Of a DNA stretch of 64,000 nt, positions 14,135 through 16,157 are shown one piece after another. The stretch is taken from sequence record OR532817.1; one strand, given 5' to 3'. Position numbers and translations under genes: made by a program. The notes under the pieces were generated by a model. The model searched no databases, was not told the origin of the DNA, and saw only the letters and a program-made list of their open reading frames with translations. Numbering within the stretch: the first letter of the stretch is position 1; the number at the start of each line of letters is the position of its first letter.

Positions 14135-14184
14135 GGATGATTATAAATCTGAATTGACAGAAACAGCTAAAACTGTTATTATCC
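14135..14184 (+). ncRNA. 50-nt D-armless tRNA-like RNA, copy 1
   Basis: GGATGAT/ATTATCC; TCTG-AATTGA-CAGA; AACAG-CTAAAA-CTGTT. Confidence 0.7.
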
Positions 14185-14192
14185 TATTTTAT

Positions 14193-14377
14193 TCCACAAT
14201 CAGACGTATATGGTGTAAGTTACGTCGATGAAATCCAGAACAAGATCTCTGGTACTCTAGGAAGTGGTGAATGTTAACCTAGACGGGTTTGTTAATTGGA
14301 CGATAAGCAATTAATACTTGACTAGCAGGTTTAAACTAGAGGTGACTGTCCTTCACTAAACTGGAAAACCGGGTGGA
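14193..14377 (+). ncRNA. candidate ~185-nt multibranch ncRNA
   Basis: TCCAC/GTGGA closes six hairpins (GACGTA/TACGTC, CCAGA/TCTGG, CTAGG/CCTAG, TTAATTG/CAATTAA, CTAG/CTAG, GTGA/TCAC). Confidence 0.55.
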
Positions 14378-14395
14378 CTTTTAATTAAAAAAGTG

Positions 14396-14424
14396 TTGAA
14401 CAAAATGTTCAATAATGATATAAT
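14396..14424 (+). promoter_or_regulatory. repeated tRNA-island promoter with TTGAAC-N5-GTTCAA palindrome
   Basis: TTGAAC-17-TATAAT with TG extension; related copies at 15341, 15766, 15972, 16179. Confidence 0.7.
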
Positions 14425-14515
14425 AAGTATCAATGTAAGGCGTGGAACAATGTTTACAGAAGTTACTTAGTAGCCTGTACGCCCCACGTCAAGGTAGCCG
14501 AAAGGCAAGTTTAAT

Positions 14516-14565
14516 GGGTGGTTATAAATCTGAATTGACAGAGACTATTAAAACAGTCACCATCC
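14516..14565 (+). ncRNA. 50-nt D-armless tRNA-like RNA, copy 2
   Basis: GGGTGGT/ACCATCC; TCTG-AATTGA-CAGA; GACT-ATTAAAAC-AGTC. Confidence 0.7.
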
Positions 14566-14753
14566 AAATTTTAATTTAATAGTTTAGTATGAATAAAAAA
14601 CAAATACATAAACATTATGATGAAATTGCAGTGAAGGTTTTTCGTGGTGAATTAGGTTATAAACCATCTGTTAAATCTAAATATTCAAAATCTTCTTCAA
14701 TAAAGTTCAATCATAAAATAGAGTTTAAATAATACTGGACAATAATATATAAA

Positions 14754-15263
14754 ATGAATATCACTAATGTAAAAGATTTTTTAGAATATTTTATTAAGAA
14801 TACTCGTGCCCGTGATGAATTAGAAAAAAATGGATTCGTTGATGGTTACGATTGCACTAATTTCTTTTATACTATTGATAAACATGAATATTATGTCGAT
14901 GCAACTTTAAGTGATGATCCATATTATATAAAAGATGGGTATTGCATTGGATTTACGTTCGAAGATAAATCACTAGATGCACCAATAAACTTTTATACAT
15001 TATATTATAATAAAAAAGATAATATTTTGAAATTAGGATTTACTTGGGATGATGAAGAAGATGTTGTATTCAATTGTAATACATGGTTAGAACATGATTC
15101 ATTCTTTCAAAGTACATTAATTCATGACTTTATGACAACAGATTTAGAGTACTGGAAAAACTGCATAGAATTACTTAATGTAATTTATAATGAACAAGTT
15201 AAAAAATTTGACAATAGTTTACACAATGATGACATTTATAATAAAAACTTTATGGGACGATAA
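14754..15263 (+). CDS. hypothetical protein, FQxS-motif family
   Basis: HDSFFQSTLIHD..TTDLEYWKNCI. Confidence 0.7.
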   Translation: MNITNVKDFLEYFIKNTRARDELEKNGFVDGYDCTNFFYTIDKHEYYVDATLSDDPYYIKDGYCIGFTFEDKSLDAPINFYTLYYNKKDNILKLGFTWDDEEDVVFNCNTWLEHDSFFQSTLIHDFMTTDLEYWKNCIELLNVIYNEQVKKFDNSLHNDDIYNKNFMGR

Positions 15264-15371
15264 TCGTAGGACGGGTCAGCATTTGGTAGTATGTTCGGCT
15301 GAATAAAGTATAAACGTCATCACCAAATTTAAAAAAAGTGTTGAACAAAATCATCAATACTGATATAATAA

Positions 15372-15608
15372 ATGAAATTTTTTTTAAGGTCATATGATAT
15401 GTTGACAGATACTAATAAAAAGATGTTTATTCAAATAGGTTTTTTTACTCTTCAAGATATCATTGATAAGGCACATGAAAAATGGCCTAATGTAAAACTT
15501 GAAGATATTCATATTGAAATAGAATGTATAGAAGAAAATAATACTTCATATCATGGTCTGAAAAACGTAAAAGTTTGCACTGAATATTACGTATTAAGTA
15601 TTGAATAA
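15372..15608 (+). CDS. hypothetical protein
   Basis: ORF directly after promoter at 15341..15369. Confidence 0.55.
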   Translation: MKFFLRSYDMLTDTNKKMFIQIGFFTLQDIIDKAHEKWPNVKLEDIHIEIECIEENNTSYHGLKNVKVCTEYYVLSIE

Positions 15609-15635
15609 TTCAGTACTGTATAATTGACTTACTAC

Positions 15636-15709
15636 GTCCCCTTAGTTCAGTTGGATAGAACAACTGCCTTCTAAGCAGTAGGTCACTGGTTCGAGTCCAG
15701 TAGGGGATA
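15636..15709 (+). tRNA. tRNA-Arg(UCU)
   Basis: Cloverleaf, CTGC-CTTCTAA-GCAG, TTCGAG T-loop; ACCA lies 2 nt downstream rather than directly after the discriminator. Confidence 0.9.
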
Positions 15710-15863
15710 TACCATACAATATGGGAATAGTTAGAAGATATTCCCAATTTTAATTTAAAAAAGTGTTGAACAAAAAGTTCAATAATGATATAATGGTATT
15801 ATAAAAGGTTGTAATACTTAATATTAACTTTTAAGAAGATAATTAGTTATCATACACAAATTT

Positions 15864-15950
15864 AGTGAGTTGGATGAGTGGTTGAAATCACCACCCTGCT
15901 AAGGTGGCATATGCGAAAGCGTATCGTGGGTTCGAATCCCACACTCACTG
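15864..15950 (+). tRNA. tRNA-Ser(GCU)
   Basis: AGTGAGT/ACTCACT, CCACC-CTGCTAA-GGTGG, long variable arm, G discriminator, no encoded CCA. Confidence 0.9.
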
Positions 15951-16011
15951 TAAAATTCAATTAAAAAAGTGTTGAACAAAAAGTTCAATGCTGATATAAT
16001 AAAAGAATAAC

Positions 16012-16099
16012 GGAAGGATGGCCGAGTGGTTTAAGGCACTGGTCTTGAAAACCAGCAATCCGAAAGGGTTCTAGAGTTCAAATCTCTATCCTTCCACCA
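16012..16099 (+). tRNA. tRNA-Ser(UGA)
   Basis: GGAAGGA/TCCTTCC, CTGGT-CTTGAAA-ACCAG, long variable arm, encoded CCA. Confidence 0.92.
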
Positions 16100-16107
16100 G
16101 ATTTTAT

Positions 16108-16157
16108 GGATAGTTATAAAGTTGAATTAACAGCGACACTTAAAATTGTCACTATCC
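16108..16157 (+). ncRNA. 50-nt D-armless tRNA-like RNA, copy 3
   Basis: GGATAGT/ACTATCC; GTTG-AATTAA-CAGC; GACA-CTTAAAAT-TGTC. Confidence 0.7.

Follow-up and report, generated by a model that had tools for sequence, protein, structure and literature searches.

The closest described counterparts of the element discussed here are the PeSLs of T4-type phages, sigma-70 promoters whose upstream part is A/T-rich and in which a stem-loop lies between the -35 and -10 boxes or over the -10; promoter and terminator activity have been measured for them, and a role in cassette shuffling has been ascribed to them (PMC2839356, PMC4122927). Here, I show that the tRNA region of the Klebsiella jumbo phage RCIP0023 (RaK2-like; record OR532817.1, of which a window of 64,000 nucleotides was analysed) contains a 50-nt element that folds on the transcribed strand and whose invariant bases coincide with sigma-70 promoter elements. 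The element is best, if tentatively, regarded as a horizontally exchanged composite of promoter and structured RNA, that is, a PeSL-like cassette. Non-tRNA species are not foreign to such regions: the tRNA cluster of T4 yields the stable RNAs C and D (species 1 and 2), which are co-transcribed with the tRNAs, exceed 100 nt, are processed as stable species and have no assigned function. In size and position these two RNAs are closer to the conserved RNAs of the window (14191-14378 and others) than to the 50-nt element.

Three copies lie on the + strand, at 14135-14184 (copy 1), 14516-14565 (copy 2) and 16108-16157 (copy 3), and their stems, linker and loops agree with what an earlier note on this DNA had described. 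Each comprises a 7-bp closing stem, a UAUAAA stretch, a 4-bp hairpin (hairpin 1) and a 5-bp hairpin (hairpin 2), forming a three-way junction that is both the minimum-free-energy and the centroid structure of each copy folded alone (-9.7, -12.9 and -11.1 kcal/mol, respectively; z = -2.4 to -3.4 relative to dinucleotide shuffles) and that is retained when the flanks are included. The closing stem of copy 2 (GGGUGGU/ACCAUCC) is the GC-richer. A covariance model recovers only these three copies in the 64-kb window, at 73-77 bits (73.1, 77 and 74.4 for copies 1 to 3), the next best match scoring 14.8 bits (E 0.12). The same note had placed two of the copies shortly downstream of CCA-ended tRNAs, which holds for copy 3, located 8 nt past tRNA-Ser(UGA), and not for the others: copy 1 lies 111 nt past tRNA-Gly, and copy 2 comes after a conserved non-tRNA RNA.

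The window, related phages and metagenomes together provide 15 distinct variants, every one exactly 50 nt long and sharing the same three-way junction. Among these variants, standard pairs fill 96.7% of the pair cells, whereas shuffles reach 85.4% and slid partners 30-61%. Both-sided changes occur at 6 pairs, all four Watson-Crick types are found at pair 31-40, and covariation is seen in all three helices. Wobbles on the + strand, which is the transcribed one, amount to 24 G·U against 2 A·C, marking the + strand as the folding strand. Covariation in three helices and this asymmetry together bear out the claim of a selected RNA structure. Of the eight differences between copy 2 and its counterpart in phage 121Q, seven fall in the hairpin stems with pairing retained, and closing stem, loops and junction are nearly unchanged. 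Loop 1 reads AAUUGA or AAUUAA, six nucleotides on a 4-bp arm, in 15/15 variants; loop 2 is a freely varying 6-mer (UUAAAA, CUAAAA, CUAACA, CUAAAC or UUUUAA).

Two further readings of these bases were considered and rejected. In the RaK2-like and 121Q copies, loop 2 (UUAAAA) could pair with the tail (UUUUAA) to form a pseudoknot, yet both of these parts carry uncompensated changes in the EJP2 and podophage copies. Protein coding was considered for copy 2, which is overlapped by an ORF at 14442-14579 (annotated as a hypothetical protein in some records); it is ruled out by the changes, which are paired stem changes without a codon pattern, and by the unrelated flanks found between lineages.

The pairing data also bear on a signal acting in DNA only, be it a promoter or an operator repeat, in which the pairing would be an incidental palindrome. 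The promoter match (see below) would be in line with such a signal, as would the dyad that nearby ordinary promoters display. However, stem sequences shift while pairing persists, G·U pairs preserve the pairing on one strand only, unlike a duplex or cruciform feature, and a protein operator would keep sequence and not complementarity. This explanation is largely refuted by the pairing and wobble data and is deemed extremely improbable; a cruciform or operator palindrome is ruled out by the one-strand wobble asymmetry.

The overlap with promoter elements had been overlooked in the earlier note. In copy 1, a promoter scan detects TTGACA (14154-14159), a 17-nt spacer and TATTAT (14177-14182), the latter preceded by TGT, hence with the TG motif. 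In the numbering of the element, the -35 box (TTGACA or TTAACA) occupies positions 20-25, namely loop 1 together with two hairpin 1 bases; the spacer consists of hairpin 2; and the 3' strand of the closing stem supplies the -10 box (positions 43-48). As all 15 variants are exactly 50 nt, the two boxes are always 17 nt apart. The corresponding parts of copy 2 are a -35-like TTGACA (14535-14540) and a weak -10-like CACCAT (14558-14563), those of copy 3 are TTAACA (16127-16132) and CACTAT (16150-16155). The sigma-70 match is 11/12 in copy 1 (p~0.0008 against shuffles) and in the Klyazma, Asterion and L013 copies (p<=0.001), 10/12 in the EJP2 copy, and 8-9/12 in copies 2 (9/12) and 3 (8/12) and in the Asteriusvirus copies; for copies 2 and 3 it is not significant taken alone (p 0.03-0.46). 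The copy 2 type, the most widespread, is conserved at this position in Asteriusvirus phages, and its -10, CACCAT, is that of all Asteriusvirus copies.

Among the promoter positions that do not vary are A-11, A-8, T-7 and G-14, along with all but one of the six -35 bases. T-7 (position 48) remains T opposite G3 in 8/15 variants, although adjacent pairs do use C. An invariant TTATAAA at -48..-42 constitutes an A/T-rich stretch upstream of the -35, as found in PeSLs. The invariance of TATAAA and that of T42 (-13), on the other hand, are not accounted for by sigma-70 rules. A T4-type late promoter (TATAAATA) was rejected as the cause of the invariant TATAAA: a match of 7/8 is reached only in copies reading TATAAATC, the remaining ones being TATAAAGC, TATAAAGT or TATAAAAC.

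The genomic slots of the copies are of two sorts. Copy 1 is followed by a U-rich tail, UAUUUUAUU (14185-14193, + strand), and, with standard spacing from -10 to +1, a start driven by it would fall at about 14189-14191, which is the 5' edge of a conserved RNA opening with ATTCCACA; copy 1 aligns in register with an ordinary 121Q promoter upstream of the same RNA. Along the same line, the copies of unrelated Klebsiella podophages sit just 5' of the first early gene. In Klyazma, the element comes after the terminal repeat, with 31 nt between it and the first early ORF, and only one other site in 3.7 kb ranks with it as promoter-like. In EJP2, tRNA-Arg follows the element at a distance of 23 nt, and there is no other promoter. 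Copies 2 and 3 occupy sites where simple hairpins with a U-rich tail close transcription units. Copy 2 is the end of a conserved RNA driven by a predicted ordinary early promoter (14396-14424, + strand) and has the tail AAAUUUUAAUUUAA (14566-14579, + strand). The tail of copy 3, again AAAUUUUAAUUUAA (16158-16171, + strand), is at the same time the A/T-rich upstream region of the next ordinary early promoter, a predicted TTGACA-17-TACAAT (16179-16207, + strand) that stands directly past copy 3, upstream of the intron-containing tRNA(CAU) that it drives. Copy 3 thereby takes the slot in which simple hairpins precede UUUUAAUUU and the next promoter, a slot held elsewhere by the 8-bp hairpin GGGAAUA.../...UAUUCCC (15722-15746, + strand; -9.5 kcal/mol), which is followed by AUUUUAAUUU and a promoter. 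Slot and tail are shared with the element by this hairpin and by the one at 12466-12484. The ordinary promoters nearby likewise carry a dyad.

The coincidence of promoter elements with the fold and the genomic slots of the copies together point to a composite promoter/hairpin cassette. The element resembles PeSLs in (i) a sigma-70-like -35/N17/-10 arrangement, close to consensus in copy 1 and the podophage and EJP2 copies and weak in copies 2 and 3 and the Asteriusvirus copies, with an A/T-rich upstream stretch and a stem-loop between the boxes or over the -10, the placement by which PeSLs are defined in PMC2839356, (ii) a stem-loop sequence that varies with pairing retained, (iii) an intergenic location in variable early regions, beside small ORFs and repeated per genome, and (iv) a tie to gain and loss of cassettes, with a dual role as promoter and terminator or attenuator being proposed. 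It differs in that its length is fixed at 50 nt and its three-way junction encloses two hairpins, whereas a PeSL is a single hairpin of variable length and position; that its junction and loop are invariant and its -10 degenerate in most copies; that its copies are few and lie within a cluster of tRNAs and small RNAs; and that it is common to jumbo myoviruses and unrelated podoviruses. The fact that the described PeSL stem-loops are simple, variable hairpins counts against the composite reading.

According to the composite reading, the element would serve on DNA as a sigma-70-type early promoter, with TATAAA at -47..-42 as its A/T-rich upstream part, and RNA read from an upstream promoter would fold the same 50 nt into the three-way junction. 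In jumbo phages, where the GG...CC closing stem appears to adjoin the U-rich tail, stem and tail could attenuate or terminate the upstream tRNA or small-RNA unit, or shield its 3' end. The two roles may be unequally distributed, so that copy 1 and the EJP2 and podophage copies, retaining a strong -10, would act mainly as promoters, and copies 2 and 3, whose stem is richer in GC and whose poor -10 is accompanied by a U tail, mainly as hairpins. Copies 2 and 3 keep TATAAA and loop 1 despite their weak promoter scores, which hints at a constraint on these parts at the RNA level.

The hairpin role might also be taken to be the only one, the element being a plain, if branched, intrinsic terminator or a hairpin at the 3' end of the early units of tRNAs and small RNAs. 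As in Rho-independent terminators, a G-C-based stem precedes a U-rich tail in the jumbo-phage copies; the tail adjoins the base of the GG...CC stem, is AUUUUUUUAAUU (U7) in 121Q, and slot and tail are those of the simple hairpins at 12466-12484 and 15722-15746. The simple terminator scan does not handle branched stems, and U-rich tails are present past copies 1-3. In contrast to intrinsic terminators, the 'loop' is branched, and loops and exact length that are invariant across genera are unusual for terminator hairpins. Moreover, the 121Q element lies inside a long operon with gp130 and three tRNAs downstream and no other promoter before them, so that these genes rely on read-through and the element cannot be an efficient terminator there. 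The Klyazma and Asterion copies are not directly followed by a U tract, and the U-rich stretch of EJP2 begins ~8 nt downstream. A terminator without a promoter role is hence judged unlikely, and the same observations on the podophage and EJP2 copies imply that, under the composite reading too, termination cannot be the universal function.

Another possibility, more doubtful than the composite cassette, is that the element is a module acting as RNA only, either discrete or as a 3'-terminal domain, in which the UAUAAA junction and loop 1 are recognised by a protein or nuclease or shape a tertiary fold. Such a module might govern processing or stability of the cluster of tRNAs and small RNAs, or be a decoy, and its likeness to a promoter would be incidental or exploited in some copies only. 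Covariation and the + strand wobble asymmetry are in accord with such a module, as are the differences between copy 2 and 121Q, the invariant loops that copy 2-type elements hold although their -10 is poor, the conserved G·U pairs (3-48 and 29-42), typical for RNA recognition sites, and the adjacent modules, which are conserved RNAs as well. Yet a perfect TTGACA exactly 17 nt from an A..AT hexamer, matching 11/12 in two lineages, is improbable by chance, and it would be left to explain why copy 1 and the Klyazma and EJP2 elements sit in promoter slots. In addition, loop 2 varies freely, and the module has neither an Rfam family nor a candidate partner.

The earlier note had viewed the element as a D-armless tRNA-like RNA, and this part of its interpretation is not borne out. 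With D-armless mitochondrial tRNAs, minihelices and the tRNA-like domain of tmRNA the element has in common a 7-bp terminal stem starting with G, a short single-stranded stretch in place of the D arm, a 5-bp helix that abuts the 3' strand of the terminal stem, and G3·U in some copies. It departs from them in a middle arm of 4 bp with a 6-nt loop and in having no anticodon loop, variable region, T-loop consensus or encoded CCA. ARAGORN called no tRNA on the 50-mers in bacterial mode or in the mitochondrial modes that allow for missing arms (-mt, -mtmam), and at lowered thresholds its only output was noise, inconsistent and not coinciding with the element. In Rfam, neither the tRNA family (RF00005) nor any other, hammerhead and other curated ribozymes included, matched the elements at E<=5. 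Instead of 5 bp and a 7-nt loop, the would-be anticodon arm has 4 bp and a 6-nt loop in 15/15 variants; instead of a 7-nt UUCRANY, six variable, A/U-rich nucleotides make up the would-be T loop; and the bases after the stem read UAU, AAA, AUU, GCU or GGC. The 7-bp stem set on the 5-bp helix without a linker is the sole tRNA-like trait, and a tRNA reading is not supported.

A weaker form of the same idea is a minimal tRNA mimic, an acceptor and T-arm minihelix with an extra hairpin, which RNase P would cut and to which CCA would be added, and which might be aminoacylated or serve as a decoy. The linkerless helices would make a 12-bp stack like that of acceptor and T arm, a pyrimidine precedes G1 in 6/6 contexts, and the copy 2 type shows G1-G2-G3·U followed by A, which is the AlaRS identity set of tRNA-Ala and tmRNA; stable non-tRNA RNAs processed by RNase P are also part of T4 tRNA clusters. 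Against a mimic stand the silence of every detector, even that for missing arms, both loops being of 6 nt with no T-loop consensus, a base past the stem that is U, A or G with CCA not encoded, the lack of G3·U in 7/15 variants, and podophage copies placed directly before an ORF, outside any tRNA cluster. Such a mimic is very unlikely. An extended version, considered improbable, would have an acceptor mimic that unrelated enterobacterial phages exchange, that RNase P or RNase E sets free and to which the CCA-adding enzyme of the phage supplies the 3' end, the promoter-like letters being a second, overlapping code; it might then engage AlaRS through G3·U or EF-Tu, or act as a decoy for host defences targeting tRNAs. 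Either an RNA-only module or a tRNA mimic, if true, would represent a new class of small phage RNA.

The element is common to unrelated phages of the same hosts, jumbo myoviruses and podoviruses, with 1-3 copies per genome (only one in the 49 kb of the 121Q tRNA region). Between relatives the flanks diverge sharply at the element edges, where tRNA-Arg, an HNH gene, ORFs or small RNAs are found, and the edge neighbours differ in RCIP0023, L056, 121Q, EJP2, Klyazma, Asterion and L013; like PeSLs, the copies are thus intergenic, repeated and located at cassette borders, which suggests transfer between phages. The loci of T4-like phages, Kuravirus and a 149-kb Klebsiella phage (KP2025) that share the neighbouring RNAs contain no copy. 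A host or plasmid repeat or a prophage element was rejected, for a pattern scan of 185,579 species genomes returned two chance matches that fail the model; BLAST of the element gave no match in 5,426 E. coli genomes, and the plasmid search one weak partial match only. Matches to the first pattern were mostly chance, and a second one (loop 1 and 3' strand), aimed at a wider family, gave no further members in IMG/VR.

Should the composite reading be true, the same 50 bases would be under two selections, for promoter recognition in DNA and for folding of a three-way junction in RNA, which, being separable position by position, would make a compact natural case of overlapping codes. The idea of mobile regulatory cassettes would extend from T4-type to jumbo phages, and would come to include exchange among virulent phages that are unrelated but infect the same hosts. 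In practical terms, the element marks promoters and transcript ends that lack annotation in genomes of the RaK2 and 121Q types, and it points to the conserved small RNAs, likewise unannotated, that are densely clustered around the tRNA genes of phages.

The modules neighbouring the copies are themselves conserved structured RNAs common to unrelated phages. A degenerate partial copy adjoins tRNA-Asn (16574-16623, + strand; covariance model 12.3 bits, E 0.68); its closing stem is absent and its hairpin 2 weak, and hairpin 1 is intact (CCUG AAUUAA CAGG, 16588-16601).

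The element is a real, unannotated and horizontally shared 50-nt motif, whose role, as predicted from sequence, is most likely regulatory, combining a promoter with a hairpin. Its three copies, with the stems, linker and loops listed in the earlier note, were borne out on the + strand at 14135-14184, 14516-14565 and 16108-16157 of the window (record position minus 62000), which is identical to Klebsiella phage RCIP0023 (OR532817.1), a RaK2-like jumbo myovirus of 350 kb. The GenBank record bears no annotation at any of the three sites, and the RaK2, CBB and fEgEco12 genome papers contain no description of the element. 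Folded alone, each copy gives a single three-way junction: a 7-bp closing stem, an unpaired UAUAAA (6 nt), a hairpin of 4 bp whose loop has 6 nt and, immediately 3' of it, a second hairpin of 4-5 bp adjoining the closing stem. In each copy the MFE and centroid structures both take this form (z-scores -2.4 to -3.4), and it is kept when flanks are added to the folded sequence, while the reverse strand yields different, inconsistent folds. Over the 64 kb, a covariance model trained on six sequences matches only the three copies (73-77 bits; next best, 14.8 bits). A decayed partial copy lies at 16574-16623 (+): its hairpin 1 is perfect, with an AAUUAA loop (16588-16601), hairpin 2 is weak, the closing stem is absent, and the copy runs into the start of tRNA-Asn.

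Searches beyond the window gave 24 hits, collapsing to 15 distinct sequences, all of exactly 50 nt (15/15), in which standard pairs fill 96.7% of the pair cells, against 85.4% in column shuffles and 30-61% with slid partners. Since the sequences are related, the shuffle counts are not probabilities, and the argument is carried by the slid controls and by the multiple pair types: pair 31-40 uses G-C, A-U, C-G and U-A, and pair 14-27 uses G-C, A-U and U-A. With pairing thus kept and both sides changed in 6 of 16 pairs, the earlier claim of a selected RNA structure is supported. Because G·U cells number 24 among the variants and A·C cells only 2, the strand that folds is the + strand, which is also the transcribed one; the same asymmetry supports an RNA and excludes a duplex palindrome or cruciform.

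According to BLAST and pattern scans, the element occurs three times in every RaK2-like genome and once, at the copy 2 position, in every Asteriusvirus (121Q, PBECO4, Salmonella SD phages and others); in phage EJP2 it is placed between tRNA-Ser and tRNA-Arg. Unexpectedly, single copies are also found in unrelated podophages of Klebsiella with 48-50-kb genomes, Klyazma (Zobellviridae, Citrovirus) and Asterion, as well as in matching metagenome contigs. Since the element was not found in 185,579 bacterial species (one genome each), in 5,426 E. coli genomes or in plasmids, and a second pattern scan of IMG/VR gave no additional members, the family is narrow and confined to virulent phages. A catalogue of ~10,000 candidate structured RNAs in phages has been published (PMC10690425).

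The view that the copies are D-armless tRNA-like RNAs was not supported. ARAGORN at default settings made no call on the element in bacterial or mitochondrial mode (the latter permits missing arms) and at lowered thresholds returned only inconsistent noise; the Rfam tRNA model gave nothing at E<=5. In all variants the middle arm has 4 bp and a 6-nt loop, the final loop is an A/U-rich 6-mer of variable sequence rather than a T loop, and CCA is not encoded in the examined contexts; on these grounds tRNA identity is rejected. Mimicry of a tRNA is a rival of low probability. In its favour, the 7+5 bp stack without linker is tRNA-like, a pyrimidine precedes G1 in every context, and the copy 2 type (14516-14566; locus L044, 4001-4051) displays G1-G2-G3·U followed by A, the AlaRS identity set at the acceptor end of tRNA-Ala and tmRNA; A3-U replaces G3·U in 7 of the 15 variants. 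Upstream of the Asterion element (L049, 1440-1475), CAGGTTCGATTCCTG and then ATTAGTCCA resemble a tRNA or tmRNA 3' end, with no ARAGORN or Rfam call.

A consensus scan identified TTGACA-17-TATTAT with TG before it inside copy 1, one of only three 11/12 sites within 5 kb, the other two being at ordinary early-promoter positions. The -35 box corresponds to element positions 20-25 (loop 1 together with the initial two bases on the 3' side of its hairpin), the 17-nt spacer to hairpin 2, and the -10 box to positions 43-48, within the 3' strand of the closing stem; the TATAAA lies at -47..-42. Copy 1 matches at 11/12, as do the copies of Klyazma, Asterion and L013 (a further locus) (p<=0.001 vs shuffles); the EJP2 copy reaches 10/12, and copies 2 and 3 and those of Asteriusvirus only 8-9/12 (CACCAT, CACTAT). 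A-11, A-8, T-7 and G-14 are among the invariant positions, and T-7 (position 48) remains T facing G3 in 8/15 variants, adjacent pairs using C freely. The strict invariance of TATAAA and T42 (-13) corresponds to no sigma-70 rule and is unaccounted for by the promoter match. In the podophages, a conserved stretch, ATGCTATCATCATTCGCC, stands ahead of the element (L050, 1150-1226; L049, 1474-1550); its ATCATC is able to pair with GGUGAU, the closing stem's 5' strand, in competition with the 3' strand, and it is also readable as a second TGnTATCAT -10-like box. Farther upstream, the Klyazma, Asterion and L013 sequences are completely different.

The preferred, if tentative, reading is that the element is a composite cassette, a promoter on the DNA and a folded RNA, with copies differing in emphasis. 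Part of the constraint would stem from promoter recognition at the DNA level, and part from a folded RNA insulating or ending the upstream unit or protecting its 3' end, individual copies leaning to either role. Copy 1 is directly upstream of a ~186-nt conserved RNA; in 121Q an ordinary promoter precedes the same RNA, its -35 and -10 boxes aligning in register with copy 1, and in T4-like Bragavirus phages this RNA comes directly after tRNA-Gly. Within Klyazma's early 3.7 kb, the element ranks among the top two promoter-like sites, ~470 nt downstream of the terminal repeat and 31 nt upstream of the first ORF, whose ribosome-binding site is clear; in EJP2 it is 23 nt upstream of tRNA-Arg. Copy 3 lies 8 nt downstream of tRNA-Ser and is followed by AAAUUUUAAUUUAA and then an ordinary promoter, a slot that simple hairpins with an identical tail take up elsewhere (12466-12484, 15722-15746). 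Copy 2 closes a conserved small-RNA unit. The 121Q element has a U7 tail and cannot be a tight terminator, because no other promoter is present for gp130 and the three tRNAs that follow.

The main rival, in which the RNA is what functions and the resemblance to a promoter is secondary, is somewhat less likely; in its favour, the copy 2 type retains its loops despite a poor -10, and the element keeps company with conserved RNA-like modules. For the composite cassette, the closest described system is the PeSL (promoter-early stem-loop) known from T4-type phages: a sigma-70 promoter whose upstream part is A/T-rich and which carries a stem-loop, mostly between -35 and -10 or over -10. For PeSLs, promoter and terminator activity have been measured and a role in cassette shuffling described (PMC2839356, PMC4122927). 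Neighbours change sharply at the element's edges and the element occurs in unrelated phages of the same hosts, both fitting that picture of a mobile regulatory cassette; unlike described PeSLs, it is a three-way junction of fixed length (50 nt) whose junction and loop are invariant, and its -10 is degenerate in most copies.

The three copies are situated in the early tRNA region, where every gene is on the + strand and ARAGORN called tRNA-Leu, Gly, Arg, Ser, Ser and Asn. A group I intron at 16232-16480 (+; Rfam RF00028, 104 bits) interrupts the anticodon loop of a tRNA(CAU) of Met or Ile2 type at 16218-16530 (+), missed by both ARAGORN and the GenBank record; at the corresponding place, 121Q has a tRNA-Met(CAT) without interruption. 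Near-identical early promoters (AAAAAAGTG TTGAAC AAAAA GTTCAA TAATGATATAAT) lie on the + strand at 14396-14424, 15341-15369, 15766-15794, 15972-16000 and 16179-16207, with a common TTTTAATTTAAAAAAG upstream and an inverted repeat that spans the -35 box plus half the spacer. The tRNA-region copies have this repeat, but some promoters of the window lack it.

Across the noncoding stretch 14024-14515 runs a mosaic of RNA-like modules, conserved at 75-90% identity in unrelated phages (T4-like, T5-like, KP2025, which is a Klebsiella phage of 149 kb, Kuravirus and even Cellulophaga), where, in the loci fetched, they sit within tRNA clusters. None has an Rfam match, two show compensatory changes, and a covariance-model scan of three module-sharing loci (L070-L072) found no 50-nt element. 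The very highly conserved ~186-nt module at 14191-14378 (+), also without an Rfam hit, shows 81-90% identity to its counterparts in Asteriusvirus and in PM2 and SdyM_006, T4-like phages of Bragavirus in which it fills exactly the tRNA-Gly(UCC)/tRNA-Asp gap; it has a compensatory replacement in one hairpin, and in position and size it is like the stable RNAs encoded in T4's tRNA cluster. Parts of the ~100-nt module at 14024-14134 (+), closed by ACAGGU...ACCUGU, are 75-87% identical in KP2025, Erwinia phages, Proteus phages (~104 kb), T4-sized Escherichia phages, a 74-kb Klebsiella podophage and Cellulophaga phages; in the metagenome locus L056 it comes directly after the stop codon of an HNH endonuclease gene, and may therefore travel with such genes. 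The conserved small-RNA unit at 14431-14515 (+), which follows the promoter at 14396-14424, ends in the hairpin GGUAGCCGAAAGGCAAG just before copy 2, and part of it is 84% identical in the Kuravirus coliphages XT18 and 1-6bf. Compensatory changes relative to the metagenome locus L055 (GGCGUGG/CCACGUC to GGUGUGG/CCACAUC) indicate that the unit is structured; EJP2 retains only its last 25 nt, fused to a tRNA-Ser.
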